DNA from: Macrostomum lignano | Lineage: Eukaryota | DNA length: 64,000 nucleotides | Assembly: GCA_002269645.1 (NCBI GenBank) | Contig: NIVC01001419.1 | Location: 62,001-126,000 of the forward strand | Reading direction: 5' to 3' | Shown here: piece after piece, positions 1 through 30,200 of the stretch | How positions within the stretch are numbered: the stretch's first letter is position 1 | Layout: each line of letters begins with the position of its first letter | Program-made: the position numbers and the translations under genes | The notes under the pieces: model-generated | The model's database searches: none | Told to the model about the DNA's origin: nothing | Seen by the model: the letters and a program-made list of their open reading frames with translations, nothing else

Positions 1-3000
1 AACTGATTTAGTGTAGCATTGCACTGACCTTGTGCAAATCTACAAGCTCTGGTTTCTCACCAACTGATTTAGTGTAGCATTGCACTGACCTTGTGCAAAT
101 CTACAAGCTCTGGTTTCTCACCAACTGATTTAGTGTAGCATTGCACTGACCTTGTGCAAATCTACAAGCTCTGGTTTCTCACCAACTGATTTAGTGTAGC
201 ATTGCACTGACCTTGTGCAAATCTACAAGCTCTGGTTTCTCACCAACTGATTTAGTGTAGCATTGCACTGACCTTGTGCAAATCTACAAGCTCTGGTTTC
301 TCACCAACTGATTTAGTGTAGCATTGCACTGACCTTGTGCAAATCTACAAGCTCTGGTTTCTCACCAACTGATTTAGTGTAGCATTGCACTGACCTTGTG
401 CAAATCTACAAGCTCTGGTTTCTCACCAACTGATTTAGTGTAGCATTGCACTGACCTTGTGCAAATCTACAAGCTCTGGTTTCTCACCAACTGATTTAGT
501 GTAGCATTGCACTGACCTTGTGCAAATCTACAAGCTCTGGTTTCTCACCAACTGATTTAGTGTAGCATTGCACTGACCTTGTGCAAATCTACAAGCTCTG
601 GTTTCTCACCAACTGATTTAGTGTAGCATTGCACTGACCTTGTGCAAATCTACAAGCTCTGGTTTCTCACCAACTGATTTAGTGTAGCATTGCACTGACC
701 TTGTGCAAATCTACAAGCTCTGGTTTCTCACCAACTGATTTAGTGTAGCATTGCACTGACCTTGTGCAAATCTACAAGCTCTGGTTTCTCACCAACTGAT
801 TTAGTGTAGCATTGCACTGACCTTGTGCAAATCTACAAGCTCTGGTTTCTCACCAACTGATTTAGTGTAGCATTGCACTGACCTTGTGCAAATCTACAAG
901 CTCTGGTTTCTCACCAACTGATTTAGTGTAGCATTGCACTGACCTTGTGCAAATCTACAAGCTCTGGTTTCTCACCAACTGATTTAGTGTAGCATTGCAC
1001 TGACCTTGTGCAAATCTACAAGCTCTGGTTTCTCACCAACTGATTTAGTGTAGCATTGCACTGACCTTGTGCAAATCTACAAGCTCTGGTTTCTCACCAA
1101 CTGATTTAGTGTAGCATTGCACTGACCTTGTGCAAATCTACAAGCTCTGGTTTCTCACCAACTGATTTAGTGTAGCATTGCACTGACCTTGTGCAAATCT
1201 ACAAGCTCTGGTTTCTCACCAACTGATTTAGTGTAGCATTGCACTGACCTTGTGCAAATCTACAAGCTCTGGTTTCTCACCAACTGATTTAGTGTAGCAT
1301 TGCACTGACCTTGTGCAAATCTACAAGCTCTGGTTTCTCACCAACTGATTTAGTGTAGCATTGCACTGACCTTGTGCAAATCTACAAGCTCTGGTTTCTC
1401 ACCAACTGATTTAGTGTAGCATTGCACTGACCTTGTGCAAATCTACAAGCTCTGGTTTCTCACCAACTGATTTAGTGTAGCATTGCACTGACCTTGTGCA
1501 AATCTACAAGCTCTGGTTTCTCACCAACTGATTTAGTGTAGCATTGCACTGACCTTGTGCAAATCTACAAGCTCTGGTTTCTCACCAACTGATTTAGTGT
1601 AGCATTGCACTGACCTTGTGCAAATCTACAAGCTCTGGTTTCTCACCAACTGATTTAGTGTAGCATTGCACTGACCTTGTGCAAATCTACAAGCTCTGGT
1701 TTCTCACCAACTGATTTAGTGTAGCATTGCACTGACCTTGTGCAAATCTACAAGCTCTGGTTTCTCACCAACTGATTTAGTGTAGCATTGCACTGACCTT
1801 GTGCAAATCTACAAGCTCTGGTTTCTCACCAACTGATTTAGTGTAGCATTGCACTGACCTTGTGCAAATCTACAAGCTCTGGTTTCTCACCAACTGATTT
1901 AGTGTAGCATTGCACTGACCTTGTGCAAATCTACAAGCTCTGGTTTCTCACCAACTGATTTAGTGTAGCATTGCACTGACCTTGTGCAAATCTACAAGCT
2001 CTGGTTTCTCACCAACTGATTTAGTGTAGCATTGCACTGACCTTGTGCAAATCTACAAGCTCTGGTTTCTCACCAACTGATTTAGTGTAGCATTGCACTG
2101 ACCTTGTGCAAATCTACAAGCTCTGGTTTCTCACCAACTGATTTAGTGTAGCATTGCACTGACCTTGTGCAAATCTACAAGCTCTGGTTTCTCACCAACT
2201 GATTTAGTGTAGCATTGCACTGACCTTGTGCAAATCTACAAGCTCTGGTTTCTCACCAACTGATTTAGTGTAGCATTGCACTGACCTTGTGCAAATCTAC
2301 AAGCTCTGGTTTCTCACCAACTGATTTAGTGTAGCATTGCACTGACCTTGTGCAAATCTACAAGCTCTGGTTTCTCACCAACTGATTTAGTGTAGCATTG
2401 CACTGACCTTGTGCAAATCTACAAGCTCTGGTTTCTCACCAACTGATTTAGTGTAGCATTGCACTGACCTTGTGCAAATCTACAAGCTCTGGTTTCTCAC
2501 CAACTGATTTAGTGTAGCATTGCACTGACCTTGTGCAAATCTACAAGCTCTGGTTTCTCACCAACTGATTTAGTGTAGCATTGCACTGACCTTGTGCAAA
2601 TCTACAAGCTCTGGTTTCTCACCAACTGATTTAGTGTAGCATTGCACTGACCTTGTGCAAATCTACAAGCTCTGGTTTCTCACCAACTGATTTAGTGTAG
2701 CATTGCACTGACCTTGTGCAAATCTACAAGCTCTGGTTTCTCACCAACTGATTTAGTGTAGCATTGCACTGACCTTGTGCAAATCTACAAGCTCTGGTTT
2801 CTCACCAACTGATTTAGTGTAGCATTGCACTGACCTTGTGCAAATCTACAAGCTCTGGTTTCTCACCAACTGATTTAGTGTAGCATTGCACTGACCTTGT
2901 GCAAATCTACAAGCTCTGGTTTCTCACCAACTGATTTAGTGTAGCATTGCACTGACCTTGTGCAAATCTACAAGCTCTGGTTTCTCACCAACTGATTTAG

Positions 3001-6000
3001 TGTAGCATTGCACTGACCTTGTGCAAATCTACAAGCTCTGGTTTCTCACCAACTGATTTAGTGTAGCATTGCACTGACCTTGTGCAAATCTACAAGCTCT
3101 GGTTTCTCACCAACTGATTTAGTGTAGCATTGCACTGACCTTGTGCAAATCTACAAGCTCTGGTTTCTCACCAACTGATTTAGTGTAGCATTGCACTGAC
3201 CTTGTGCAAATCTACAAGCTCTGGTTTCTCACCAACTGATTTAGTGTAGCATTGCACTGACCTTGTGCAAATCTACAAGCTCTGGTTTCTCACCAACTGA
3301 TTTAGTGTAGCATTGCACTGACCTTGTGCAAATCTACAAGCTCTGGTTTCTCACCAACTGATTTAGTGTAGCATTGCACTGACCTTGTGCAAATCTACAA
3401 GCTCTGGTTTCTCACCAACTGATTTAGTGTAGCATTGCACTGACCTTGTGCAAATCTACAAGCTCTGGTTTCTCACCAACTGATTTAGTGTAGCATTGCA
3501 CTGACCTTGTGCAAATCTACAAGCTCTGGTTTCTCACCAACTGATTTAGTGTAGCATTGCACTGACCTTGTGCAAATCTACAAGCTCTGGTTTCTCACCA
3601 ACTGATTTAGTGTAGCATTGCACTGACCTTGTGCAAATCTACAAGCTCTGGTTTCTCACCAACTGATTTAGTGTAGCATTGCACTGACCTTGTGCAAATC
3701 TACAAGCTCTGGTTTCTCACCAACTGATTTAGTGTAGCATTGCACTGACCTTGTGCAAATCTACAAGCTCTGGTTTCTCACCAACTGATTTAGTGTAGCA
3801 TTGCACTGACCTTGTGCAAATCTACAAGCTCTGGTTTCTCACCAACTGATTTAGTGTAGCATTGCACTGACCTTGTGCAAATCTACAAGCTCTGGTTTCT
3901 CACCAACTGATTTAGTGTAGCATTGCACTGACCTTGTGCAAATCTACAAGCTCTGGTTTCTCACCAACTGATTTAGTGTAGCATTGCACTGACCTTGTGC
4001 AAATCTACAAGCTCTGGTTTCTCACCAACTGATTTAGTGTAGCATTGCACTGACCTTGTGCAAATCTACAAGCTCTGGTTTCTCACCAACTGATTTAGTG
4101 TAGCATTGCACTGACCTTGTGCAAATCTACAAGCTCTGGTTTCTCACCAACTGATTTAGTGTAGCATTGCACTGACCTTGTGCAAATCTACAAGCTCTGG
4201 TTTCTCACCAACTGATTTAGTGTAGCATTGCACTGACCTTGTGCAAATCTACAAGCTCTGGTTTCTCACCAACTGATTTAGTGTAGCATTGCACTGACCT
4301 TGTGCAAATCTACAAGCTCTGGTTTCTCACCAACTGATTTAGTGTAGCATTGCACTGACCTTGTGCAAATCTACAAGCTCTGGTTTCTCACCAACTGATT
4401 TAGTGTAGCATTGCACTGACCTTGTGCAAATCTACAAGCTCTGGTTTCTCACCAACTGATTTAGTGTAGCATTGCACTGACCTTGTGCAAATCTACAAGC
4501 TCTGGTTTCTCACCAACTGATTTAGTGTAGCATTGCACTGACCTTGTGCAAATCTACAAGCTCTGGTTTCTCACCAACTGATTTAGTGTAGCATTGCACT
4601 GACCTTGTGCAAATCTACAAGCTCTGGTTTCTCACCAACTGATTTAGTGTAGCATTGCACTGACCTTGTGCAAATCTACAAGCTCTGGTTTCTCACCAAC
4701 TGATTTAGTGTAGCATTGCACTGACCTTGTGCAAATCTACAAGCTCTGGTTTCTCACCAACTGATTTAGTGTAGCATTGCACTGACCTTGTGCAAATCTA
4801 CAAGCTCTGGTTTCTCACCAACTGATTTAGTGTAGCATTGCACTGACCTTGTGCAAATCTACAAGCTCTGGTTTCTCACCAACTGATTTAGTGTAGCATT
4901 GCACTGACCTTGTGCAAATCTACAAGCTCTGGTTTCTCACCAACTGATTTAGTGTAGCATTGCACTGACCTTGTGCAAATCTACAAGCTCTGGTTTCTCA
5001 CCAACTGATTTAGTGTAGCATTGCACTGACCTTGTGCAAATCTACAAGCTCTGGTTTCTCACCAACTGATTTAGTGTAGCATTGCACTGACCTTGTGCAA
5101 ATCTACAAGCTCTGGTTTCTCACCAACTGATTTAGTGTAGCATTGCACTGACCTTGTGCAAATCTACAAGCTCTGGTTTCTCACCAACTGATTTAGTGTA
5201 GCATTGCACTGACCTTGTGCAAATCTACAAGCTCTGGTTTCTCACCAACTGATTTAGTGTAGCATTGCACTGACCTTGTGCAAATCTACAAGCTCTGGTT
5301 TCTCACCAACTGATTTAGTGTAGCATTGCACTGACCTTGTGCAAATCTACAAGCTCTGGTTTCTCACCAACTGATTTAGTGTAGCATTGCACTGACCTTG
5401 TGCAAATCTACAAGCTCTGGTTTCTCACCAACTGATTTAGTGTAGCATTGCACTGACCTTGTGCAAATCTACAAGCTCTGGTTTCTCACCAACTGATTTA
5501 GTGTAGCATTGCACTGACCTTGTGCAAATCTACAAGCTCTGGTTTCTCACCAACTGATTTAGTGTAGCATTGCACTGACCTTGTGCAAATCTACAAGCTC
5601 TGGTTTCTCACCAACTGATTTAGTGTAGCATTGCACTGACCTTGTGCAAATCTACAAGCTCTGGTTTCTCACCAACTGATTTAGTGTAGCATTGCACTGA
5701 CCTTGTGCAAATCTACAAGCTCTGGTTTCTCACCAACTGATTTAGTGTAGCATTGCACTGACCTTGTGCAAATCTACAAGCTCTGGTTTCTCACCAACTG
5801 ATTTAGTGTAGCATTGCACTGACCTTGTGCAAATCTACAAGCTCTGGTTTCTCACCAACTGATTTAGTGTAGCATTGCACTGACCTTGTGCAAATCTACA
5901 AGCTCTGGTTTCTCACCAACTGATTTAGTGTAGCATTGCACTGACCTTGTGCAAATCTACAAGCTCTGGTTTCTCACCAACTGATTTAGTGTAGCATTGC

Positions 6001-6817
6001 ACTGACCTTGTGCAAATCTACAAGCTCTGGTTTCTCACCAACTGATTTAGTGTAGCATTGCACTGACCTTGTGCAAATCTACAAGCTCTGGTTTCTCACC
6101 AACTGATTTAGTGTAGCATTGCACTGACCTTGTGCAAATCTACAAGCTCTGGTTTCTCACCAACTGATTTAGTGTAGCATTGCACTGACCTTGTGCAAAT
6201 CTACAAGCTCTGGTTTCTCACCAACTGATTTAGTGTAGCATTGCACTGACCTTGTGCAAATCTACAAGCTCTGGTTTCTCACCAACTGATTTAGTGTAGC
6301 ATTGCACTGACCTTGTGCAAATCTACAAGCTCTGGTTTCTCACCAACTGATTTAGTGTAGCATTGCACTGACCTTGTGCAAATCTACAAGCTCTGGTTTC
6401 TCACCAACTGATTTAGTGTAGCATTGCACTGACCTTGTGCAAATCTACAAGCTCTGGTTTCTCACCAACTGATTTAGTGTAGCATTGCACTGACCTTGTG
6501 CAAATCTACAAGCTCTGGTTTCTCACCAACTGATTTAGTGTAGCATTGCACTGACCTTGTGCAAATCTACAAGCTCTGGTTTCTCACCAACTGATTTAGT
6601 GTAGCATTGCACTGACCTTGTGCAAATCTACAAGCTCTGGTTTCTCACCAACTGATTTAGTGTAGCATTGCACTGACCTTGTGCAAATCTACAAGCTCTG
6701 GTTTCTCACCAACTGATTTAGTGTAGCATTGCACTGACCTTGTGCAAATCTACAAGCTCTGGTTTCTCACCAACTGATTTAGTGTAGCATTGCACTGACC
6801 TTGTGCAAATCTACAAG
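1..6817. repeat. 61-bp tandem satellite, about 112 copies visible, truncated by the window start
   Basis: The unit AACTGATTTAGTGTAGCATTGCACTGACCTTGTGCAAATCTACAAGCTCTGGTTTCTCACC restarts at 1, 62, 123 and so on. The array ends mid-unit at ...CTACAAG (6817). No variant units were seen by eye. Confidence 0.98.
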
Positions 6818-8608: not shown

Positions 8609-10285
8609 ATTGTTATGTCTTGAATTTAAAATAAGCTGCACAAGTCGTCAAGTGGTGCTGCAAAATAATTACGTACTTCTTACGCTCCAGACCTCTTAAG
8701 GTTTTTCTATATTTTAGCTTGCCACACAGCGGGCTTTAAAACTGGCACTGTCTCTTGACTTCATGCGAGCCCATAGATAAAAGCAAAACGGTCCAAACTG
8801 AAAACATAAATACAAGTACACAGCCAAGTCACATTAGTTCTCTTTGGGGCTCTCCCTGTCTCTGACTTGGTTCTCTTTGGGGCTCTCCCTGTCTCTGACT
8901 TGGTTCTCTTTGGGGCTCTGACAGACAGAACTGACTGACAGAACGATAAGCGCGTGCATTGCCTACCAAATTTTACGGTCTTGTTTTTACTAATAAAGCC
9001 CTTTTTGTTTATATATGCATAAAATTTCAAACATTGCGTACAACATACAAAATGTTGTATTGTGGCAAAGTCGCTAGGCTTGCGTTTCTGTAATGACGAG
9101 ATACAGAGATTTAGCTAATTTGTTCTAATAAATACGAGCGTGTACAACTGCCAAATTTATCTAAATCAAGCGAGACGAAGCTTTACAAAAATGAAGCTCG
9201 CGTTAAAGATTAGATGAGGCATACAGGATCGTGGCTTTTGTGCATGAGCCTGCTAAGCGTTGTTTCTGAACTATTTTCGCTCCGTTTCTCAGTGCCAGTG
9301 TGTCCAGTCTACAAGAATGTTGAGCGCAAGGCTGCTTATATAAATTAGGAATTCTGCAACTTAGCTATTAGAAAAAAAGGAAATCTATAAAGCATTCAGC
9401 ATTGCTTTCCTGCCTACTAAAAGTAGCGTAAAATGTATAATTAGCCTGTTTGTATTATGAATAGCTGGGGCCAGTGTCATGAAGGAAGTACAAGTTTCTC
9501 ACTATTGATACAGCAGAAAGAGGAGTGACAAAGGGGATGTCAAAATGGAGCCCGAGACATTCGGTCTGGACTTCTTTACGCCAGTCTCTTTTTTATTTGG
9601 AGTCAAATAGCTCCCGTTATGCCTAAATGATGGGATTGGCTTTTTTCTGGAGTCTCAAGTTCAAATGAAATCCCCATCTATCTCGTTTCTCCCCATAAAG
9701 ATCCCCAAATGTCTCAAAGGTTTTAGGCGAAGTCGGTTCGGTTGTCGGTTTCATAAAACAAAACGTTGATTGCAAGTAAATTGATTACAATTGACTACAA
9801 TTTGTTACAATTGATTGTATTGATTACGTATAACCGCACCTCTGAAGTCCGTTAGTTCATTCTGCTACATTTGCGACCAATCTGAGGCGCATTCTCGCAA
9901 ATTAGCCTGGATCTTATTTACTAAAACATCAGGAGCAGCTAATTAGAGTGCAGCGGTATAGGGGCGAGGCTGGTTGCTAGCCATGCCATGCAGTAGCTTT
10001 TCATTCGCTATTTTTCGCACGGATGCCTGCAACGCAGTCTCGCAGGAAATGGATTATTTTTGCATTGAAGACAGAAAAATGGGTCGGATAGGCGTTGAGT
10101 TCGGCAATTATGGGCTAGCCAGGCATTCTGAATAGTTGGGGAAAACTTCCCCGTGACGAAGCATTAGCGATGCCATTGGCTGGGCCAGGCTGCTTCGAGA
10201 GCATACAAAAGTCCCGTTTGGCTATGCCCTCATCCTTACTTTGACTCCATCTATCCGAACACAACGAATAGTTAGCATAGCATTG

Positions 10286-13247
10286 ATGCTACTAATAGTA
10301 GTTGCAGTCTTGGCTTTACTGCTGCCGGCAGCACGAACTGCCATGTTGGATGCGCTGACCGCTTCAGCTTGCAGGCCCGGCTCAGTGGCTCTGGCGGCAG
10401 CAGTCAGTGCGGGAAGCTGCGAATCTGGCAACCTGCCAGTAGCCGGCTGGGAGACTCGCTTCCTGCGCGCTTTCGCTGCGTTTCACGCCGCAGAGCTGGC
10501 GAACGCGGATCCCAGCTTGGCGTTCGCGAACGCGTCGGGGCCAGCGGGATATCCGGCTTTGGGCCTCGTCTACCGGGACACCTGCTGGCGCGAGGACGTT
10601 GCGGCAGAGTTTGTCCGACGCCTGGAGCCGCACTGGCTCTATCCGGATGTGTACACTGGCAACTCCAGCGGCCTCTGCCGTCTGAGAGGTCAGCCCGGCT
10701 CTCGGCCGCTGTACTTCGTCCTGGGCCTTGTCGGCGGCTGGTACAGCTCGGAGACGCGAACAATGTCCCGCGTAGTGCAGCTTTCCGGCCTGCCGCAGGT
10801 GGCCACGGAGGCGAGCAGCGATCAGTTCAGCGACAAGTCCGAGTTCCCCAACCTGTTCAGGCTGGTGCCGCCGGACTCTTATCAGTCGCGCGTGCTGGCC
10901 GACGTTATTCTGCACTTCGGCTGGACCTACGTTGGGCTGTTCTACGCAGACACCGCCAACGGCAGCGGTCTGGCTTTGAAGCTACGAGAGGCGCTGCAGC
11001 CAACCAGAGTCTGTCTGGCTTTTTCCGTCGGAATGAACAAGTTGGTCACGAAGGATGTTCTGCTAACAAAGCTCAGAGCTGCTCAGGCCATGCGAGTTCT
11101 GGTTGTGGTGGAGCAATTGTACAACCTGCCGAAAGATGTTCTGGAGTACATTGGCAGCAGAGGCATTCTGTTGATTCTGACAGACATCAACTTTACTGGC
11201 TTTAAGCACTACAGTAAATACGCGCTCACTGTATCCTTCAAGAGATTTCCTGCGCCAAGTATGATGGAAAAGTACCTGAACTTCACCTACTCTGACTTTC
11301 TTCGCTACCCCTATGGCTTAGAGACTGCCAGAGCGCTTTTCAACTGTTCTGTCTGCACAAAGTGTTGTCAGTTGAACTCAAGCATAAGAGCTGGTTCAGT
11401 CTCCAAGTTCAACGCATCGGCAGTGATAGTTCCCGCTGCCAGAACTATTGATGCTGTACACTCCATCGCTAGAGCGATTAGCCAGGTAGCTACAGGACCA
11501 AACTGCTCAGCATATTTTCGCAATCGATTCGACGAGCCATTAATAAGCTGCATGACAAGCGACAAGTTGCTGTCAGCGTTGCGTTCTCAAAACTTCACCG
11601 GGCTGGCTGGAACTGTTGGCTACGACTCACACGGAGACGGCCTGCCGAACTACGTGGTTGAGCAGCAGGTGTCGGATGCGGATTCTGACACTCGAGTGGT
11701 TGCATCCTGGCAGGCTGGCAGTGGGTTAACTGTGCACTCGGACAGGCTTACCTGGCCTGCTGTCCCCCAGTCCCGGTGCAGCGAGCCCTGCTCTGCCGGC
11801 CAGTACCGCATGGATCTGGACATCTGCTGCTGGCTCTGTCGGGACTGTCGAACCAACGAAATTGTATCGAGCAACGGCAGTCTTTGTCTGGCTTGTGAAG
11901 CTTTCCAATGGCCGTCGGCGGACAGACTGAGCTGCAGTCCACTGCCCGTCACCCAGCCTGGCGGAGCTGTCGCGATCTACGCTATCAGCGGAGTCGGTTT
12001 CGTCTCTGCCGTCACCTCCGCAGGCTTTGTTGTCTGGCATCGCGGAGATCAGCTGTTGAAGGCGTCTTCGATAGAGCTGAGCCTATGCAGTCTGGCGGGA
12101 ATCGCAGTGGGTTACGCCGACGCATTCGCCTTCATGTGGCCTCCGTCAACGCTGCTGTGCAACCTCAAAAACTGGCTGTTCCACCTTAGCCTGACGCTGG
12201 CTTACGCCAGCCTGTTTGTCAAGACCGCCAGAATCTACCGGGTGTTTGCGAACTCAATGAGCGGTAGATCGAAAACCAGGTTCACGAGTCGCGCGTCTGT
12301 GCTCGCTGGAACCTTAATTATTCTTATGGTTCAGGTGAGTAAATATCGTTCAGATTTTTACGGATATTCAAGAAACTATGGTTTATTAATAAATTCAGCT
12401 GCATTTTGTAGGAACTGCACTTACACTGCACTCTCTGCCCCAGGAGGTTCATGACTCTCTTGCCTAAACTTGCTTATTATTTACTAAGTCTCAACCATCA
12501 CTTCACCTCCACCCAAATATCTGCAGCAGTTCTTTGCAGCAGCTTTATTATCGTTGTAATTTTTTTGTTGTCCTTCGATTTTGAGGGCCACAGTGTGGTC
12601 AGAAAGTATATAAATATACTTGCCCCTCAGCGCCACAACAAACGCTCTAGGGAGGCAAACGTAGACTTCACACACATTTCTTATTAGTTACCCAGGTACG
12701 AACTTTTTCCGAATCCTCTAAGCGCCATTTGCATTCTCAGGCAGTCATTCTGACGGTGCTGACGTTGCTACAACCGATCGAGGTTATCCAGCTGCAGACG
12801 TCTGCTGTTCAGTCGTCAGACAGCTCAAAACCGGCTTCAGTTGAAGAGGACTGCAACTTCGTCCTTCAGATGACCGGCTGGGCTCCCCTAGCCTTCAATT
12901 TGATTCTGGTCCTAGCCACATCCGGGCTGTCGTTGCGAACCAGACACCTGCCGGAGAACTTTCACGACACCAAGTGCATCCTGGCGAGCTCAGCGTGCGC
13001 CGTGTTCCTCTGGACTGCCTTCGTGCCGGCCCTGCTGACTGCAGGACAGCTCGCCACGCAGTCCCTGCTCCTCTGCTTTGCTCTTCTATCAACAAACACC
13101 CTCGCCCTGGCGGTGCTGTTCGGGCCGAAGTTCTACGCGATTCTGGTCGGCTCAAGTAGGCATGGAAACTTCAATTTCTATGGAGGCGCCACTGTGCGCA
13201 ATTGTGCCACTGCTGATAATGCCACAGAGGATCCTGGAGATAAGTAG
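10286..13247 (+). CDS. class C GPCR (mGluR/CaSR-like orphan), join(10286..12334,12741..13247), about 850 aa
   Basis: The signal peptide is MLLIVVAVLALLLPAART. Venus-flytrap motifs are RDTCW, FSDKSEFPNLFRLVPPDSYQ, HFGWTYV and FTGLAGTVGYD. The nine-Cys domain (SRCSEPC...CCWLCRDC) is followed by 7 hydrophobic segments with VKTARIYRVF, LPENFHDTK and FGPKFY. A phase-0 intron runs from CAG/GTGAGT (12335) to TTCTCAG (12740). Confidence 0.93.
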
Positions 13248-13808
13248 TGATTTGGCAAAGACTGGAAGCTGGTAACGGCCAGTGGAGTTCCGGTTTTGAC
13301 CAGTGTAGAAATGTTTAAAGTTTCACCCCTCCCCGTCTCGCTCAGTCCCAATGCTATGAGACAGACTTATAGTAGTCACTTACTGCAGATGAAACCTACA
13401 AGGTAAAATGTTGGTGAGTTGATCTTTAAGTTTTACGTCCAGCTACTCTAGAAGACTCTGTTGTACCTCAAAAATCAATGCCTACACTGAAAAAAATATA
13501 ACTTGAGAAAAAAATATTGTCTTAGACTGCTCTGTGTAGATTTTTTCTGGCAAAAAACACAAATTCCTGTATTTAAGCAATGAGTTTCTCTATTAAAAAC
13601 CTGCTATAAAGAGTTCTGCACAATCGTTGTAAGATTGTCTCGGTTGACAGTGATATGATTTTTTGTTGATATCTAATCCAAGATCCCTAGAAAGTACAAG
13701 TACGCATGGGTACTTCATTTATAAGAAATTGCTTTAAAGGTAACTAACTGTAAAGTAGGTAAGTTGAAACAAACAATGCAATGAAAATACATTTTTTTAG
13801 GAAGCATT

Positions 13809-14996
13809 TTAGCACCAGGGGCTTTAGCACCAGGGGCGCCAGCACCAGGGGCTTTAGCACCAGGGGCTTTAGCACCAGGGGCTTTAGCACCAGGGGCTTT
13901 AGCACCAGGGGCTTTAGCACCAGGGGCTTTAGCACCAGGGGCTTTAGCACCAGGGGCGCCAGCACCAGGGGCTTTAGCACCAGGGGCTTTAGCACCAGGG
14001 GCTTTAGCACCAGGGGCTTTAGCACCAGGGGCTTTAGCACCAGGGGCTTTAGCACCAGGGGCGCCAGCACCAGGGGCTTTAGCACCAGGGGCTTTAGCAC
14101 CAGGGGCTTTAGCACCAGGGGCTTTAGCACCAGGGGCGCCAGCACCAGAGGCGCCAGCACCAGGGGCGCCAGCACCAGGGGCTTTAGCACCAGGGGCTTT
14201 AGCAACAGGGGCTTTAGCACCAGGGGCTTTAGCACCAAGGGCTTTAGCACCAGGGGCTTTAGCACCAGGGGCGCCAGCACCAGGGGCTTTAGCACCAGGG
14301 GCTTTAGCACCAGGGGCTTTAGCACCAGGGGCGCCAGCACCAGGGGCTTTAGCACCAGGGGCTTTAGCACCAGGGGCTTTAGCACCAGGGACTTTAGCAC
14401 CAGGGGCTTTAGCACCAGGGGCTTTAGCACCAGGGGCTTTAGCACCAGGGGCTTTAGCACCAGGGGCTTTAGCACCAAGGGCTTTAGCACCAAGGGCTTT
14501 AGCACCAGGGGCTTTAGCACCAGGGGCTTTAGCACCAGGGGCTTTAGCACCAGGGGCGCCAGCACCAGGGGCTTTAGCACCAGGGGCTTTAGCACCAGGG
14601 GCTTTAGCACCAGGGGCTTTAGCACCAGGGGCTTTAGCACCAGGGGCTTTAGCACCAGGGGCTTTAGCACCAGGGGCTTTAGCACCAGGGGCTTTAGCAC
14701 CAGGGGCTTTAGCACCAGGGGCTTTAGCACCAGGGGCTTTAGCACCAGGGGCGCCAGCACCAGGGGCTTTAGCACCAGGGGCTTTAGCACCAGGGGCTTT
14801 AGCACCAGGGGCTTTAGCACCAGGGGCTTTAGCACCAGAGGCGCCAGCACCAGGGGCGCCAGCACCAGGGGCGCCAGCACCAGGGGCGCCAGCACCAGGG
14901 GCGCCAGCACCAGGGGCGCCAGCACCAGGGGCGCCAGCACCAGGGGCGCCAGCACCAGGGGCGCCAGCACCAGGGGCGCCAGCACCAGGGGCGCCA
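13809..14996. repeat. 15-bp minisatellite AGCACCAGGGGC(TTT/GCC), about 79 copies
   Basis: Two interspersed unit variants are present. The same family recurs at 29036-30200. Confidence 0.97.
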
Positions 14997-16620: not shown

Positions 16621-17276
16621 TGCAGTGAGGCGCAGTGCTGATTGGCGCATGCAGGGGTGTACTGAATACACTAGCGCTTATGGGAAAAATCCGACCTTCT
16701 GGCAGAATCGTTGAATATCTCGACGGTCCGGAGGGCTGGCGATTTGATTCTTGTTTGAGAAGGTGCGCAACAAAAAGTCAGCCCGTGTTCTTGAATTTCG
16801 TGTGCCTGCGTTGCTCCGTCCCAGCGCACCAAAAAATTGTCAGGGAGAATCCCCCCCGGTAGTTCTACTGTCAAGCCATTCTTTCATCTGCATGTCACTT
16901 CAAAATCGCTCAAAGTTCTCGAAAACTGAATGAAAACTGGATTGGGTGGCTTATACTCGTAAACAGGTGGCTTACAGGTTTCGCATCTCGAGTTGGCTTA
17001 TCAACTTTTTTCAATGAGTTTACATGGGGAAATATCCGACATGTTTGCGAACGATCATAGTTCGATCGTTTCAATTGTTTGACAAGAAGTTGACAGCGCG
17101 GCTGACAGATTGAAGCTTATAGTGACGACCGCCTACGCAAAGATTCGTGTCAGAATGGCTCAAGCCTATCAGGTGAACCAGGTGCAAAAAGTCTATATAA
17201 GAGAGAGATCTGTTCCGAGCCAAGTGTTCAATCAGTCCAAGGCAACTTCTAAGCGCGCCTAAGCTGTTCAGCAAAA

Positions 17277-17897
17277 ATGTCCGCCGCCTGCAAAACCGCC
17301 CTCGTCGCGATCTTCATGCTCGCCAGTTTAATCTCACTGGGACTCGCCGCCAGTCATGCTGAACTGATGGAGCTGCCGGCTGCTGCAGTGGCCAAGTCCG
17401 GCATCCAATTCGCTAAAAGGATTCGCATGGACAGTGAGTCATACTTGAACTGGAAAGGCCAAACCCCCCCTCCCAATAGAAAGTCAGGACCGAGGTGCAA
17501 CCATGAGTGAACGGGGCTGCCTGTGTGTCAGAAAACGATAAAAATGAAAGATAAGAGCTACAATTTCAATGAAAAAAGGACTATTAGAGACAGAAAGCTA
17601 GATAATGTACAACACGCTCGTGGAAAGTAAATAGCAGGAAGGCAGGAAGGCAGTACTAACCCTGGTGCAACGCCTTCGTCTGGTGTTCGTCTGACACGTG
17701 ATACATCGTTTGACACCTTTACAATGTTGCCAGCGCCCCCCCCTCTCTTCACTCCGATTGCAGCTCACCGAGCATTCGTACCGTTCTGCACCTATCGTTG
17801 CGAGATGCACTTTGGTAGGGAACGGGGCTGCGTCGGCTACGTCAATCAGAAGGAGGGCAACTGCCTGTGCGCCTGCCCCCGGCCTGCTGGCAACTGA
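17277..17897 (+). CDS. secreted Cys-rich peptide precursor (defensin/toxin-like), join(17277..17433,17764..17897), 96 aa
   Basis: The signal peptide is followed by a prosegment ending in KR. The donor is A/GTGAGT at 17434 (phase 1) and the acceptor is pyrimidine-rich, TTGCAG ending 17763. Exon 2 continues in frame as THRAFVPFCTYRCEMHFGRERGCVGYVNQKEGNCLCACPRPAGN-stop. Confidence 0.72.
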
Positions 17898-18257
17898 CCA
17901 ACCGATTCGCCGTTGGCTGACAGTTCACCGGAAAATGCGCTTAAATGTTACGAACCGATTTATAGATATTTTTCCGCACATTCCCAATTAGATATTTCTC
18001 GGCAAGACTGAGAAGTTTTATCATTTACCATTTTAAAAGCAAGTTTGTAAGTTAATCAAATCAGCCAATGGACAGAAATATTCCGGACTAACTATATCCT
18101 ACTACTGTACAGTAGAATGACTTGAGTTTAGTTTTTATTATTTTAACATCATCAACAATACAACATTCACTTACAGCGCATATGAAAGTGATTGCAGCTG
18201 TATGATTGATAGCTGAAGTAGTGAAACTTCTTTGAGAGCTTCTTCACATATATTAAC

Positions 18258-18362
18258 AGAGATTCACAGAGATTCACAAAGATTCATAGAGATTCACAAA
18301 GATTCACACAGATTCACAGAGATTCACAGAGATTCACACAGATACACAGAGATTCACAGATT
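18258..18362 (+). repeat. 10-bp repeat AGAGATTCAC, about 10 copies
   Basis: This is the reverse complement of the array at 18985-19395. Confidence 0.9.
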
Positions 18363-18984
18363 TTGTATTAATAAGCAATGTTGGAAATCCAAACTTCCAC
18401 TTTCTAAGAACCGCGTTTAGTTGAGAGGAAAATCGTTCTAAAATGAAAGCAGCAATGAAAAGCAACTGCAGTAAGAAATGACATCTAAGTAGTTACACGC
18501 GTAATTAAAGTGCTTAATTTACAAGCAGATTCGGAGCAACGGACGTCATTACCTTGACAACCACGATCCCTTCCGATCGAATTTCAGTCAGGAATGTAGC
18601 TCCGAACTCGTGACCTGTTTGAGGGCATCCTCAAATGAAAGTACAATTAACAATTGAAATTTCCGAAAGTCTATTGGGTGACACTTAATTAAATAAATGC
18701 GTGTGATTCGTTATTGAGTATCGATTAGAAAATAAGAATGTCTAACTAATATGAAAAAAATGTTCAATCTATTAGTTACAGTGACAATGCAAATGTGCTT
18801 TAGTTATTAGCTGACCTATTTTTGGATTGCTACTGGAGCGACTGTATATAAATATGAATTAGCACCTTTGCTCCATGCAATGATGTTTTTAAAATGATGT
18901 TTCACTGCACGTTTCATAACAGAAATATATTGAATACTTAGCAATATACAGCTTACGTATATACGCTTGTACATTGTGATGGCT

Positions 18985-19395
18985 GTGAATCTCTGTGAAT
19001 CTATGTGAATCTATGTGAATCTCTCTAAATCTCATGAATCTGTGTAAATCACTTTGAATCTCTGTGAATCTATTTGAATCTCTGTGAATCTATTTGAATC
19101 TCTGTGAATCTATGTGAATCTCTGTAAATCTCTATAAATCACTTTGAATCTCTGTGAATCTATTTGAATCACTTTGAATCTCTGTGAATCTATTTGAATC
19201 TCTGTGAATCTCTGTGAATCTCTGTGAATCTCTGTAAATCTCTATAAATCACTTTGAATCTCTGTGAATCTCTGTGAATCTCCATGAATTTCTATGAACC
19301 TCTGTGAATCTCTATAAATCACCTTGAATCTCTGTGAATCTCTGTGAATCTCTGTGAATCTCTGTAAATCTCTGTGAATCTCTGTGAATCTCTGA
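18985..19395 (-). repeat. 10-bp repeat (GTGAATCTCT on +), about 40 degenerate copies
   Basis: Seen directly; it is inverted relative to 18258-18362. Confidence 0.9.
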
Positions 19396-19492: not shown

Positions 19493-22400
19493 TCACAACT
19501 TTGTGCCAAAAGCTTCTACCAAAGTTTCATCATCCTGCTCAAAGTGCTCAAAGTTGTCCCTGCGGCAACAATCGCAGCAGTTGCAGTCTTTGTCGCCGCC
19601 TGTGTCACCATCGTCTTTGTCACGAACTTCTCCCTCTCCATCTTCTTCGCCGTCGCTCTCGTCATCGATGAGGCGCGTGATCGCCTCCTCGGAATCGAAC
19701 TTGGGACGTCGCAGCCTCGTCAACTGGTGCTGCTCGGTGCTGCTGGGCCGGCAGCTCAGGTCCAGCTGAGTGCAGAAGCTGCTCGGTTCGTAGGCCCGCG
19801 AGCGAACCAAGTCAAAGTTGATGCGACCTTTGAAGAACGGCGACCTGGCCAGAGCGGACAGGGAGACAATTCGTCTTTCGGGCAACTTCTGCAGCAGCCG
19901 TTCGATGGTGTAGCGGCACTCCCAGGTGAGACTGGCCGGCGCCTCGAAGCTGTGCTGCCGGACCAGCTGGCGCATCTGGCGGCAGGTTGGCGCCGCGTGC
20001 AGCGGAAACTGCAACGAATGTCCATCAGCTTTGAAAGAATTTAAAGCTGGTGAATTTGTATGCCAAGGACTACTTAAGTAGAAGGACGCGAAACTATGTT
20101 TCTGGGAAAATTTTAGGGAGGCAGGACTTTCCGAAAAAATACACTACGGAGATAGGAAGTTTCCATTTTTTCAGCACAAAAGTTGTTATTGCTTTCGATA
20201 GGAATTCTTAGCTGACTGTGTAACAATATGTGTAACAGAAATGATAAAATAGATTCATAAAACCAAAGAGCCGAGCCGTGCACTTCTATTGGTCTTTAGG
20301 CCAATAGAATCCTAATTTTCTAAACGGAAAGCTCTATGAATATCAATAGAGCTACTCGTATGAGATTTTTTTATTAGAGTCAGGGGGGTTGTGTGCACCC
20401 TGGCGCACTTTAAGCGACATTGTCACACAACCGGCGAGAGGCATTACTGTCCATTCCGCCGACTCCCCTGAGCAGGCATACAAGCGCGCGGATACGTACG
20501 CAGGCACACACTCACACAGGAGTGTACAGCGGCCCTAACTTTATATTATCGTTAGGCATGTACACTTCACTGCGCCTTGGGGGGTTGGCTCTCAAGGCCG
20601 TTAATTACACGAGCAGAGCCAAGCCGAGATTCCAATTCAGCCCCAAATTAATGTGACTGCACTTGGAATTGAGCCTGGGTCGCTGGCACGCCAGAGCGTG
20701 CGCTAGACCCCCTTACTCGTATAAGATAGGCAAAGCATATTAAAAGAATAACATTGGGTCTGTCTCCTATCGAAAGCAATAACAATTTTTGTGCTGAAAA
20801 ATGATAGCTTCTTATCTACTTTAGTAGTAGTCCTTCTACTTTAGTGGTCCTTGAGTTTTACAAGTATATTAAATTTATAAAAAGTATAGAGGCTTGGCAA
20901 GCGCATTTTGTTTAAGTTTATGAAGCTCACCTTTCCAGTGACTAGGGCGTAGAACAGGATGCCCAGGGACCACCAATCGACGCTGTGATTGTACGGCCGG
21001 CCGCAGAGCATCTCAGGTGCTGGAATGAACAGGTTGTGACCCAGCACAGCCCTAGGTCAGACAGAGGGGGAAGTGGCCCCAGCCGGTAGTTTTACTATTA
21101 AATTCTGCTGAGCCATGCTTGGGTGAGAGAGATTATGCTAATTTTCTCTGCGCACTGGCCTAAGACTTTGGCATGGTGCCAAAATGTTCTAACTAAACTT
21201 TCCAGTTGCACCTAGACTGCCTGATCAAACAGTTTTGTTTTGACGCTGAGGCCTTGCTTAAGTCATTAAACGAAAAGGACATATTCTTATTCGTGAATTA
21301 TAATTATAAACCTAATTAATAAAGATGGAAAAAAGCTCATTTAAACAAAGTAATTTAAAATTAATTTCGGTGCCCCGACTGCACGGAAGCTGCAACTGTT
21401 TACTGTAGGGGTGTTCGGGTCGGCCATTTTTTCGGGGTTCGGGGTTTACCCCGAACCCGGTACCCCTACCCCGAACCCCGAACCCCGTCCCGAACATTTC
21501 TTCCAACCCGAACCCCGAACCCGGTACCAAAACCCGACCCGACCCCGAACATTTTCACGCTTATTTTGGTCAATCATTTTAATAAATTCAGTTTTCAGTT
21601 TTCAATTTTTCAGTTTTTAGTTTTGAATTTCAGTTTTAAATTCAGTTTTATATATTGAGATGTGCCTTAACAGCTTCAACCACTTAGCCTTGTGGTTTTA
21701 TTTCCCTTAGCTACTCTACAACTAGGAAAAGAAATATGAAACACTTCTTGCAATGGGATTGGGATTGAGATGGAAGGAATACCAAGACCCAAGATCTAAT
21801 AGTAAGATACATGAAAGTTCACAACTAAAATCAGGACCATTTCGTACCTATACTTACAACGAAATTGCTTTCATAGTAATATTACATCTATGAGTTTATT
21901 TAAGCTGCAAAAATAGAGTACAATAAAATTAGATTCTACCCTGTAGTGCAGATATCAGAAGAGATAGAACTAGAGCGATAAAGAGATGGCACAGATAAAA
22001 CAATGATACAATGAAACAGGAGACTTAATCACAAATATTTATTTATTTTTACTTTTGACTACAGTTAACAGTAAGTCAGTAGTGGTATAACAGAATTGCT
22101 ATGTAAAAACTAAAGTGACGTCTTTACATAAAATTGTATGCTGATATGAGTAGGTAATCATTGTGATAATTGATTGGCGACTGATGCGTGGAGAATAATA
22201 GTGTATTTATACATTTTAAGCTTCCTCATCCAATCCAGAAGTTCAGACCATGTTACACGTAGCACATGCAAAATTATTACTGAACGTAATTTTTTAAATC
22301 ATCAACTGCAAGACTGAATGGGTCGAAAAACTACAATCGTTATTTACCAGAAAGTGTAAATGAATCCATGGTTCTATCTGCTATTTCCGTTTCAAATTGT

Positions 22401-25400
22401 ATGTAAAATATAACTTAAGTTGTACCTGAAACTCAATGCATATCTTTCGTATTGTGGATTTTGCATAAGGAGTAAAAAGTGCTTGAAAATATTCTTGAGA
22501 ATGATAATTGTTCAAAACCCCGAAAACCCCGAAAACCCGGTGGCCAAACCCGACCCGAACCCCGAACCCGGTACCCCTACCCCGAACCCCGAACCCGACC
22601 CGGAACACCTACCCCGAACCCCGAACCCGGTACCAAAACCCGACCCGAAACCCGACCCGACCCCGAACCCCGAACACCCCTAGTTTACTGGATGGCTGCT
22701 TTATCAAGTGCGCAGTTACTGCCAACTCTGGAATGCGGGGCATTTCAGCTGATCAATTCTTGTTGTATTTACGAGCTAAATTTCCAAGCCAACAATACGC
22801 TTGTAACACTTTAACTCTATAATAAAGAGGCCAGAATTGCTGATTTGCCTAGCAATAAAATGACTGCGCAACATCGAGTCTTTGCTCAAAAAACTCCTAC
22901 TTGGTCAAAGTGCAACAACACTTGACGAAACCTCACCTGAGTAAGCCAGAGTACCGCACATGGTCCTCGTCACCTGACCCCTTCGAAGCCACTTGCTCAA
23001 GCCGAAGTCAATCAGTACGAGATGACCGTCCGAGTCCATGACGACATTCTCCAGCTTGAGGTCGCGAAACACGACACCAGAGTCGTGCAAGAAGTCGATG
23101 GCGCAGGCCAGCTCAGCCAGGTAGAGTCTCGCCAACGACTCAGAGAATTTGCCGTGCAGTTTCCACAGGGCGAATAGTTCACCGTTGGGGAAGTACTCGA
23201 GCAACAGGTAGAGCCGCTTTCGAGTCTGCCAGTGGCTGAGCAGGCTGGCTACAAAACAGCTGCTCTTGCCTGACAGATCCGACTGGATGCTCACCTCCTC
23301 CTTGGCCTGCGACACCATGGCGTGGCATCTGTGCACCAGGCGGGCCTTGTCGATGACCTGAAAGAAAAGTCGAAAATCGAGTACGTGCGGTGCTCTGATC
23401 GGCAACGGGTCAAAATGATAGTTGTACAAAATGATAGTTGTACAAAATGATAGTTGTACAAAATGATAGTTGTACAAAATATGATAGTTGTACAAAATGA
23501 TAGTTGTACAAAATATGATAGTTGTACAAAATATGATAGTTGTACAAAATATGATAGTTGTACAAAATGATAGTTGTACAAAATATGATAGTTGTACAAA
23601 ATGATAGTTGTACAAAATGATAGTTGTACAAAATGATAGTTGTACAAAATGATAGTTGTACAAAATGATAGTTGTACAAAATGATAGTTGTACAAAATGA
23701 TAGTTGTACAAAATGATAGTTGTACAAAATATGATAGTTGTACAAAATGATAGTTGTACAAAATATGATAGTTGTACAAAATATGATAGTTGTACAAAAT
23801 ATGATAGTTGTACAAAATGATAGTTGTACAAAATGATAGTTGTACAAAATGATAGTTGTACAAAATGATAGTTGTACAAAATGATAGTTGTACAAAATGA
23901 TAGTTGTACAAAATGATAGTTGTACAAAATGATAGTTGTACAAAATGATAGTTGTACAAAATGATAGTTGTACAAAATGATAGTTGTACAAAATGATAGT
24001 TGTACAAAATATGATAGTTGTACAAAATGATAGTTGTACAAAATATGATAGTTGTACAAAATATGATAGTTGTACAAAATGATAGTTGTACAAAATGATA
24101 GTTGTACAAAATATGATAGTTGTACAAAATGATAGTTGTAGAAAATATGATAGTTGTACAAAATATGATAGTTGTACAAAATGATAGTTGTACAAAATGA
24201 GAGTTGTACAAAATGATAGTTGTACAAAATGATAGTTGTACAAAATGCTAGAGCAGAACATCATAATGAAGATGTCTGCTCTTCTAAATTATCTTTATTG
24301 AATATACGTCAGAAGTCAAATCTACAAAGTTTGAAATTCTTCGTTAGATAATTGGTCTTTAGTTGGAATATCGACGCAAATTTCGACATCAAGAGAGCCT
24401 CAGACATGTAAATTTTTGAAAGAGCCTGAGCAGTTTCGGAATGAACGAGCCTTGAAACTCGTTTACATAGCCAAGATTGTTACTCATATATCGTGCACTC
24501 GTTCGCATAATGGTGCGACTGATGCTAAAAGTACTTGTACTTTATGATTTAATTGTCTGCTAGTCTGTATAGTTAGCTTGACAAAAATGACGGGGTAATA
24601 AATTAAAAACGTCTTGAAAATTTCTGCAAGGCACGTTCTCTGTCTCGATGCAACTCAGCTATAGCGTCTCAATTGCTCCATTTGCTTGCTAAGAAAGCAT
24701 AAGCCGCAGTCATAAAACAACTGTAACTTAATCTCAGATGAGCTCCAACGGCGACACTTGCGGCTGCATGGCGTTGTGCTTTTGGAGTCTGGCAAATCCA
24801 GACAGATAGTAGCTACCCTGAGACAATGCTTGATACGAGCATGGCTCGGCATCACTGCATGCTAGCTTGCTTCTCTAGCTTTTGACTATTCATAACTCAT
24901 TTCCATGAAGCCTGCAGTTTCTGAGCCTAGTTTTTGCTCATCTTTTTCAAGTCTAGAGTTCTCTCCGTCATAAATTTATGATTGAGAGAGAGAAAAAAGT
25001 TATTTTTTGAAGTGGTCTCATGACAAGTAAGCGGTCTGGGCTGCTGGCCCTCTGTCACCCCGAAAGAAACCGCTAGCTTAGTAGTCAAATTATTTAGTTA
25101 TGAGTAATTAATCTAGACTAGTTAGCTAATAAAAATTCAGTGCAAAATAAAATGCAGCTTCCTAAATACTCTTTTGACTACACAATTTTACTTTAACGAC
25201 TTGACTTGACATTCTACCATAGAGGGTAGAAAAGCGACGTAACGCTTAAAAAATTGGGTTTTAAAATCAAAACTGTGGCCTTCTTAATTGTTTATTCGTA
25301 ATTTTGCCATGCCATGCAGAAGTAAACTACATATTTTTTGGTTTCGCAGAGATTACTTTTTGTTTAAATGCATTGCATCAACATCCCGAATGCTCCCGAC

Positions 25401-26049
25401 AGCTATCGCTTCAAAGAATCTAATTGGGAGTTTGCGAGAAAACGGAAAACTTTGTATTCAACATCTACATGATTTTAATGCGATATTTCCGCCTACATGT
25501 ACTGTCGTTGATCCTTGTTGACATCCTTAACGTAGCTATATGCACTTATAATATATGCACTTATATCTAGACTTACAATTGAAAAGTTCATCTCACCTTC
25601 AGCGCGTACTCTTTCTTGTCGTCGTCGCACCGGACTTTCAGCACATTCCCAAACGAACCGGCCGCGATGACGTCCAGCACTTCGAAGCCGTCGAGCTCTT
25701 GCGGCCCGCAGCAGCGCACCGGATAATCTGGCAGGAACAGCGACTCGACGTTCGGCACCGGCCACTTGGACTTGGAGGCGCCGAACTTGCTGAACAGCGT
25801 CGACCGGTGGATTCGCTTGCGACTTTCGCGGTTCCACTTGTTGGCGATGCGCTTCTGCGCCTCCGTGTCGTCAGGTGTCGATCGACACTGCTTCAAGGCT
25901 TTCTGACAGTCTTTCGTGGCCGCTGCGGCGACGCTCAGTCTGGAGGCCCATCGACGAAGTCGTCGAAAGGAGGTCTCGCGGCCATTGAATGAGGCATGGC
26001 TGTCCTTGGCTGCCATGGCAACTAATTGTTGAGCTTGGCTGTTGCCCAT
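19493..26049 (-). CDS. RSKR: AGC-group Ser/Thr kinase, RSKR/SGK494-like; exons 26049-25597, 23357-22937, 21019-20931, 20008-19493; about 492 aa
   Basis: Kinase motifs are [41 protein letters not shown] and [12 protein letters not shown]. The pre-kinase LFLPDYPVR and HWQTRKRLY match my recollection of SGK494 (FLPEFPIR, SWQGKRHL). All three introns are GT-AG with compatible phases 0, 1, 0. Confidence 0.85.
20167..20801. mobile_element. MITE-like element with about 37-bp terminal inverted repeats in kinase intron 3
   Basis: TTTTTCAGCACAAAAGTTGTTATTGCTTTCGATAGGA (20167-20203) is the reverse complement, with 1 mismatch, of 20765-20801. Internal blocks resemble sequence at about 49640-49730. No TSD was identified. 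Confidence 0.55.
21406..22682. mobile_element. non-autonomous hAT-type DNA transposon, 1277 bp, in kinase intron 2
   Basis: It has 14-bp TIRs TAGGGGTGTTCGGG / CCCGAACACCCCTA and a perfect 8-bp TSD GTTTACTG (21398-21405 and 22683-22690). CCCGAAC subterminal repeat clusters lie at both ends. There is no transposase ORF. Confidence 0.9.
23413..24250. repeat. 17/19-bp minisatellite AATGATAGTTGTACAAA(AT) in kinase intron 1
   Basis: Seen directly; each unit carries the palindrome TTGTACAA. It artefactually extends three ORFs. Confidence 0.96.
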
Positions 26050-29035: not shown

Positions 29036-30200
29036 AAGGGCTTTAGCACCAGTGGCTTTAGCACCAGGGGCTTTAGCACCAGGGGCTTTAGCACCAGGGG
29101 CTTTAGCACCAGGGGCTTTAGCACCAGGGGCTTTAGCACCAAAGGGCTTTAGCACCAGTGGCTTTAGCACCAGTGGCTTTAGCACCAGTGGCTTTAGCAC
29201 CAGTGGCTTTAGCACCAAAGGGCTTTAATGTAGCACCAGGGGCTTTAGCACCAAAGGGCTTTAGCACCAGTGGCTTTAGCACCAGTGGCTTTAGCACCAG
29301 TGGCTTTAGCACCAGTGGCTTTAGCACCAGTGGCTTTAGCACCAGTGGCTTTAGCACCAAAGGGCTTTAATGTAGCACCAGTGGCTTTAGCACCAAAGGG
29401 CTTTAGCACCAGGGCTTTAGCACCAGTGGCTTTAGAACCAAAGGGCTTTAGCACCAGGGGCTTTAGCACCAGGGCTTTAGCACCAGGGGCTTTAGCACCA
29501 GGGCTTTAGCACCAGGGGCTTTAGCACCAAAGGGCTTTAGCACCAGTGGCTTTAGAACCAAAGGGCTTTAGCACCAGGGCTTTAGCACCAGGGGCTTTAG
29601 CACCAGGGCTTTAGCACCAGGGGCTTTAGCACCAAAGGGCTTTAGCACCAGGGCTTTAGCACCAGGGGCTTTAGCACCAGGGCTTTAGCACCAGGGGCTT
29701 TAGCACCAGGGGCTTTAGCACCAGTGGCTTTAGCACCAAAGGGCTTTAGCACCAGTGGCTTTCGCACCAGGGGTGCCAGCACCAGGGGTGCCAGCACCAG
29801 GGGTGCCAGCACCAGGGGTGCCAGCACCAGGGGTGCCAGCACCAGGGGTGCCAGCACCAGGGGTGCCAGCACCAGGGGTGCCAGCACCAGGGGTGCCAGC
29901 ACCAGGGTGCCAGCACCAGGGGCTTTAGCACCAGGGGCTTTAGCACCAGGGGCTTTAGCACCAGGGGCTTTAGCACCAGGGGCTTTAGCACCAGGGGCTT
30001 TAGCACCAGGGGCTTTAGCACCAGGGGCGCCAGCACCAGGGGCTTTAGCACCAGGGGCTTTAGCACCAGGGGCTTTAGCACCAGGGGCTTTAGCACCAGG
30101 GGCTTTAGCACCAGGGGCTTTAGCACCAGGGGCTTTAGCACCAGGGGCTTTAGCACCAGGGGCGCCAGCACCAGGGGCTTTAGCACCAGGGGCTTCAGCC
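29036..30200. repeat. 15-bp AGCACCAGGGGCTTT family minisatellite, second locus, more variant-rich
   Basis: This is the same family as 13809-14996, with variant blocks (AGTGGCTTT, AAAGGGCTTT, GGGGTGCC). Confidence 0.96.

Follow-up and report, generated by a model that had tools for sequence, protein, structure and literature searches.

A two-exon gene for a six-cysteine peptide

Does a 64,000-nucleotide stretch of the flatworm Macrostomum lignano (GenBank contig NIVC01001419.1, positions 62,001 to 126,000 of the forward strand; here called the window, with positions counted from its first letter) contain an unrecognized gene for a secreted, defensin-like peptide, and if so, to which family does the peptide belong? 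A first-pass annotation had proposed a hidden two-exon gene at 17277-17897, assembled by splicing a GTGAGT donor to a TTGCAG acceptor. We find that this gene (Mlig020375) is genuine, transcribed, and correctly reconstructed and that it is already annotated. Its product is best read as a lineage-restricted, secreted peptide of the cysteine-stabilised alpha/beta (CS-alpha-beta) type. To the complete reading, a secreted CS-alpha-beta (cis-defensin-type) peptide with a rearranged six-cysteine framework that most probably serves as a host-defence (antimicrobial) effector, we give about even chances.

The coding parts of exon 1 (157 nt) and exon 2 (134 nt) join to a 291-nt in-frame coding sequence (CDS) of 96 codons plus stop, which encodes MSAACKTALVAIFMLASLISLGLAASHAELMELPAAAVAKSGIQFAKRIRMDTHRAFVPFCTYRCEMHFGRERGCVGYVNQKEGNCLCACPRPAGN. 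From end to end, this product of 96 amino acids (aa) has 100% identity with GenBank PAA68142.1 and PAA77746.1 of M. lignano, titled 'hypothetical protein BOX15_Mlig020375g3/g1', which confirms the splice at the coordinates first proposed. Along 20.6 kb, the window shows 100% identity to NIVC01001419.1 (assembly GCA_002269645.1), the genome of a free-living flatworm. The gene models of this assembly in GenBank derive solely from transcripts assembled from RNA-seq data (with StringTie/TACO and as a de novo transcriptome), in which TransDecoder was used to call open reading frames (ORFs) (PMC5730564). That a CDS with precisely this junction was annotated is thus indirect evidence that the transcript is spliced. 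The first-pass argument that such an exon behind canonical splice sites would hardly arise by chance also held up, given the full-length identity to a protein with RNA-seq-derived annotation and the rarity of its core cysteine arrangement among shuffled sequences (0.27%; see below).

An unspliced 77-aa ORF at 17277-17510, which starts with the ATG at 17277 and reads through the donor at 17434, was rejected as the product because the transcript-derived GenBank CDS contains the splice; it is the mere output of a prokaryote-style ORF finder on an intron-containing eukaryotic gene. What did not hold was the description of the gene as hidden, since three genomic copies with this very splice are annotated in GenBank and UniRef already carries an invertebrate-defensin name for the product. 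UniRef100_A0A1I8H4X4, the same protein cluster, is named 'INVERT_DEFENSINS domain-containing protein', and the third copy, g2 (PAA67319.1), appears in UniRef as 'Invertebrate defensins family profile domain-containing protein'. Both names are presumably derived from automatic matches to the PROSITE profile PS51378.

A literature search found the gene identifier, the accession numbers, and the peptide string in no paper. The gene identifiers and the peptide were likewise absent from the supplements of PMC5730564, PMC5816591, PMC12896417, and PMC7336406 and from the part of the PMC10414684 supplements that was searched. An older 400-aa model (UniRef100_A0A1I8I6D2, 'Apple domain-containing protein') holds aa 1-88 of the precursor fused to unrelated sequence and is evidently a mis-merged prediction from an earlier assembly.

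The elements of the locus are as follows.

17194..17201, + strand: TATA-like box TATATAAG, 76 nt 5' of the ATG, read from the sequence; putative promoter element
17277..17433, + strand: coding part of exon 1, aa 1-52 and the first base of codon 53
17277-17360, + strand: predicted signal peptide, aa 1 to about 28, from hydropathy and the -3/-1 residues
17361-17420, + strand: putative prosegment, aa 29-48, ending in the dibasic K47-R48; I-R-M-D then closes exon 1
17434..17763, + strand: intron of 330 nt, GTGAGT...TTGCAG, phase 1 (157 nt = 52 codons + 1)
17764..17897, + strand: coding part of exon 2, from the remainder of codon 53 to aa 96 and the TGA stop; carries the entire cysteine-rich domain
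17787..17876, + strand: six-cysteine core (precursor aa 61-90), for which AlphaFold2 predicts a helix and then a beta-hairpin

A C/T-rich tract precedes the TTGCAG acceptor, which ends at 17763. The TATA-like box is present with the same sequence in a second genomic copy.

Judged by its sequence, the N terminus is a typical signal peptide: a hydrophobic stretch (aa 7-24) follows K6, and small residues at -3/-1 would permit cleavage after aa 24, 25, 26, or 28. Both this signal peptide and the dibasic KR site ahead of the cysteine-rich part, as proposed in the first-pass annotation, are thus present in the precursor. The precursor would enter the secretory pathway via the endoplasmic reticulum and lose its signal peptide, and the prosegment may be trimmed after K47-R48. 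If cut after KR, the mature peptide would have 48 aa, a net charge of +3, and an isoelectric point of 8.7; the net charge of the 30-residue cysteine core is +1.

Predicted fold and disulfide pairing

In the numbering of the putative mature peptide, the six cysteines are residues 13, 17, 27, 38, 40, and 42. Their spacing is C-x3-C-x9-C-x10-C-x-C-x-C, as first described, and the framework is indeed atypical, with no cysteine upstream of CxxxC and with a terminal CxCxC. All six are encoded, unsplit, by exon 2 behind the phase-1 intron, and the stop codon lies six residues beyond the last of them. In arthropod and mollusc defensin genes, the mature domain is located on one exon flanked by a phase-1 intron (PMC6435467). 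The flatworm gene shares this layout.

AlphaFold2 was run on the single sequence, without an alignment, for the mature 48-aa peptide and for the full precursor. The peptide was modeled with a helix at residues 9-21 and strands at 28-32 and 37-41, at a mean predicted local distance difference test (pLDDT) score of 76 (82-86 in the core). The same elements appeared in the precursor, with a pLDDT of 89-91 over aa 61-90, and the predicted template modeling (pTM) scores of both models were 0.41-0.50. In both runs, CxxxC (C13, C17) fell in the predicted helix and CxC (C38, C40) in the second predicted strand, so that, in prediction, the definition of a cysteine-stabilised helix motif applies. In this respect the CS-alpha-beta signature named in the first-pass annotation stood, whereas no defensin-like structure was retrieved with Foldseek (see below). 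Among composition-preserving shuffles (six cysteines in 48 residues), the spacing CxxxC-x6-12-C-x4-12-CxC occurred in 0.27%, and the looser pattern of CxxxC followed by CxC in 3.6%.

The models also suggest a disulfide pairing. A four-residue turn at 33-36 places residues 27 and 42 opposite each other across the hairpin, and therefore the two leftover cysteines would form a cross-strand bond. We infer the disulfides C13-C38, C17-C40, and C27-C42, the last of which is also implied by the mytilin alignment described below. If the predicted geometry is right, three disulfides would lock the helix onto the hairpin: C13 and C17 on the helix would be bonded to C38 and C40 on strand 2, and the classical bond between an N-terminal cysteine and strand 1 would be replaced by the cross-strand C27-C42. 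The resulting compact, mildly cationic peptide would act outside the cell.

Comparison with mytilins and other CS-alpha-beta peptides

The peptide was aligned by the Smith-Waterman method to a panel of 19 CS-alpha-beta peptides, in which the mytilin B sequence was identical to PDB 2EEM. Of these, the mytilins alone were conspicuous: mytilin B reached a score of 54 (z = 5.0; p = 0.002 relative to shuffles, and p = 0.015 when the shuffling left the cysteines in place). Charybdotoxin (p = 0.21) and Rs-AFP2 (p = 0.39) aligned to the peptide no better than to shuffles. With a hidden Markov model (HMM) of 14 canonical mytilins (2EEM and those in Table 1 of PMC7168163), the peptide reached 12.4 bits, a score attained by 1 of 2000 full shuffles and by 3 of 2000 cysteine-fixed shuffles; other CS-alpha-beta subfamilies scored 4.1 bits or less. 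The hhalign comparison with the mytilins covered 22 hairpin columns (P = 7.4e-4, probability 26%).

In the alignment, C13, C17, C27, C38, C40, and C42 of the flatworm peptide correspond to mytilin C1, C2, C4, C5, C6, and C7. Common to both are CxxxC near the start, the terminal CxCxC, a long hairpin spacing (x10 in the flatworm peptide, x11 in mytilins), and the pattern R-x-R-G/R-C-x-x-Y-V...G-x-C-x-C-x-C-x-R. Furthermore, both come from spiralian animals, and the helix and hairpin predicted for the flatworm peptide line up with the mytilin cysteine positions.

The differences are equally clear. Mytilins have eight cysteines, in the array C-X3-C-X3-C-X4-C-X11-C-X-C-X-C-X2-C, that are joined in four disulfides; in their precursor, the mature peptide comes after a signal peptide and is followed by an anionic C-terminal extension, and their gene has 4 exons (PMC7168163). 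In contrast, the flatworm peptide has six cysteines (Phe21 stands in place of mytilin C3, and C8 is absent), its precursor carries an N-terminal prosegment, its gene has 2 exons, and its charge is +3 compared to +7 to +10 in Mytilus. Membership in the mytilin family was rejected on the grounds of cysteine array, precursor layout, and exon number. Since mytilins are thought to have originated within Mytilidae (PMC7168163), ancestry could be shared at the superfamily level at most. We regard the resemblance, seen at the level of sequence, as a weak lead on the scaffold and not as membership.

Similarities to other CS-alpha-beta groups were also noted. The CxxxC-x9-C segment equals the C2-C3-C4 spacing of insect defensins. 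With the six-cysteine defensins of invertebrates (Phormia defensin A, MGD-1, plectasin), the peptide shares a precursor of the signal-pro-mature type, the dibasic site in it, and a CxC in the last strand; these defensins have C1 upstream of CxxxC, whereas the sixth cysteine of the flatworm peptide follows CxC. Scorpion short-chain toxins and plant defensins are similar in the CxxxC/CxC motif and in the small secreted precursor, but differ in the number and placement of cysteines.

Is the peptide a classical invertebrate defensin, as its UniRef names imply? The consensus of the six-cysteine invertebrate defensins is CX4-15CX2HCX6-9GX1CX4-9CX1C (PMC6435467). In the flatworm peptide, C1 is absent, Arg replaces the His of CxxHC, RGC takes the place of GxC, and 10 residues separate C4 from C5, outside the range of 4-9. 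Because it departs from this consensus, the peptide is not a classical defensin, despite its PROSITE-derived name, and assignment to PF01097 / PS51378 was rejected on both the defining cysteine array and the sequence profile.

Database searches for relatives

A word-indexed search of 5.8 billion proteins gave no match besides the protein itself. When 1.84 billion representative proteins were searched exhaustively by phmmer with the 48-aa peptide, the protein itself and one other sequence (E = 9e-4) came up, and no credible relative. This second sequence was rejected as a relative: it has a C-x4-C spacing, it lacks CxC, and its score was raised by four repeat copies. It is a 217-aa ORF of four 55-aa tandem units on an ENA contig (117.8 kb) and probably represents a translated satellite. 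A close match to a described family, which would have removed the novelty suggested in the first-pass annotation, was found neither in Pfam nor in PDB nor among the 1.84 billion proteins.

Three genomic copies

The gene is present in three near-identical genomic copies, compared here over 17277-17897 of the window, 10001-10622 of NIVC01000725.1, and 3001-3627 of NIVC01001493.1. The ORF is kept in all of them. The only amino acid differences are F13L and L33P, both in g2 (PAA67319.1) and located in the signal and pro regions; exon 2 shows one synonymous change and zero amino acid changes. Searched by tblastn with the peptide, neither the 64-kb window nor the paralogous loci showed another copy or a cluster.

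Substitutions among the copies amounted to 3/582 in exons, 3/659 in the intron, and 147/5626 in the 1.5-kb flanks. These are too few for a test of selection, and the intron is conserved as well as the exons. The invariance of exon 2 is compatible with constraint, at numbers that carry no statistical power.

A gene downstream (19493-26049, - strand) encodes a 492-aa protein kinase (Pkinase / PK_Tyr_Ser-Thr) and is convergent with the peptide gene; it is the same neighbor at all three loci, which are therefore duplicated blocks. Such blocks are expected, as the M. lignano genome is partly duplicated (PMC5730564). As a separate observation, the transcription unit including the intron is ~5x less diverged among the copies than the 1.5-kb flanks (6/1241 and 147/5626, respectively); gene conversion is one possible cause, constraint on the transcript another.

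Weighing the function and the fold

By analogy, host defence is the single most likely function of the peptide, and we favor it because nearly all animal peptides of this architecture serve defence. Several results weigh against a CS-alpha-beta host-defence effector. Foldseek searches of PDB with both models found no defensin, toxin, or mytilin (best E value, 1.3-1.4), a comparison that has little power for a domain of <50 residues. The peptide matched no defensin, toxin, or thionin family in Pfam at E values up to 10, and a sequence search of PDB gave nothing relevant; the sequence matches obtained (YacG, Shavenoid, ARNT, and CopC) were at chance level. An HMM of classical defensins (19 arthropod, mollusc, and fungal defensins) gave 0.1 bits, matched by 400 of 2000 shuffles. 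Mytilin B, a solved CS-alpha-beta peptide, reached only -0.3 bits with the same HMM, and failing it is therefore uninformative on superfamily membership. Moreover, the mytilins were picked after the fact from the 19-sequence panel, with an hhalign probability of just 26%, and the 1.84 billion proteins contain no homologue in which cysteine conservation can be compared. The peptide lacks defensin C1, the histidine of CxxHC, and the GxC motif, as well as the N-terminal loop and the His common to lipid-II-binding defensins. A net charge of +3 (core, +1) is low for a membrane-active antimicrobial peptide. Finally, no expression or infection-response data were found in the literature and supplements.

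Some of these points can be turned into an argument for the same fold in another role. The peptide could be a secreted gland product used in reproduction (seminal fluid or prostate) or adhesion, or it could be an extracellular signal or ligand. Plants use CS-alpha-beta scaffolds as signaling ligands. The weak cationic charge and the lack of both a GFGC-type N-terminal loop and the CxxHC of classical lipid-II-binding defensins would suit such a role. Restriction to a lineage, seen here in the lack of relatives among the 1.84 billion proteins, typifies reproductive and gland proteins that evolve fast, and antimicrobial peptides as well. Against such a role, the literature search gave no data that place expression in testis, prostate, tail, or adhesive organs, and most CS-alpha-beta peptides of animals that have a signal-pro-mature precursor serve as defence peptides or toxins. 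We consider a non-immune secreted role (reproductive, glandular, or signaling) unlikely, yet a serious rival to host defence.

Next in rank, and improbable in our view, is that the fold itself has been misread: the peptide would be a secreted cysteine-rich orphan with another disulfide topology, and CxxxC/CxC together with the AlphaFold2 secondary structure would be misleading. The Foldseek result for both models and the lack of a Pfam, PDB, or defensin-HMM match are compatible with this, as are the pTM of the alignment-free models and the frequency with which shuffles show CxxxC followed by CxC. Against it, the stricter core spacing is rare among shuffles, the two AlphaFold2 runs agree with a core pLDDT of ~90, and the cysteine positions coincide precisely with the helix and strand 2. 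In addition, UniRef lists the protein under the PROSITE profile of invertebrate defensins, and the similarity to the mytilin profile exceeds that of cysteine-fixed shuffles.

A toxin-like modulator of ion channels, with a scorpion-toxin-type use of the scaffold for predation or deterrence, is very unlikely. The CS-alpha-beta-type pattern and the signal-pro-mature precursor are features that scorpion toxins have as well, but the charybdotoxin alignment did not exceed shuffles and Pfam yielded no toxin family. Moreover, we know of no venom apparatus in M. lignano, a small diatom grazer.

That the annotation is an artefact, an ORF that is transcribed and untranslated, is hardly credible: the protein is annotated merely as 'hypothetical', has no homologue, and, with exons and intron equally conserved, gives no signal of protein-level selection, but the splice sites are canonical, the junction is in frame, the signal peptide is clean, the cysteines are even in number and form a structured pattern, the AlphaFold2 core is confident, and the amino acid differences among the copies all lie outside the cysteine domain.

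Possible implications for flatworm host defence

A 2023 survey screened both M. lignano assemblies with BLAST and HMM searches whose seeds included mytilins (PMC10414684). Its conclusion was that CS-alpha-beta peptides are not encoded by flatworms, an absence that was called surprising (PMC10414684). The gene described here is a candidate exception that profile methods have missed; the defensin HMM used in this work misses the peptide as well. Tentatively, and with a likelihood that we put somewhat below even, the peptide is the first genuine CS-alpha-beta peptide of Platyhelminthes and founds a six-cysteine subfamily in which the cross-strand C27-C42 stands in for the N-terminal disulfide. 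If so, the published absence from flatworms (PMC10414684) would be overturned and would reflect a failure of detection rather than gene loss, and profile-based screens would be shown to miss such variants. The peptide would also be another natural case of disulfide rewiring on the CS-alpha-beta scaffold. Should the fold be true, M. lignano, a transgenic model amenable to RNA interference, would be a convenient animal in which to study a flatworm host-defence peptide. The stakes are modest: this is one small gene in one species, already in databases with a defensin-profile label, and its fold and function are predicted.

Surroundings of the gene in the window

Upstream of the peptide gene lies a gene for a class C G-protein-coupled receptor (10241-12454 and 12729-13247, + strand), with ANF_receptor, NCD3G, and 7tm_3 domains distributed over two ORFs. 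It is absent from the gene list for the locus.

The window is rich in tandem repeats. Positions 1-6817 are taken up by a 61-bp satellite (111.8 copies, 100% matches); that 6.8 kb of repeats are perfectly identical points to a very young array or to an artefact of assembly or polishing. Two arrays ~14 kb apart, at 13808-14992 (79 copies) and 29038-30199 (77 copies), are built from the same 15-bp unit, TTTAGCACCAGGGGC or one of its rotations, and many other minisatellites are present. Directly 3' of the peptide gene, a 10-bp repeat, CTGTGAATCT (complement AGATTCACAG), occurs in a short run at about 18250-18330 and then in a 41-copy array at 18983-19394.
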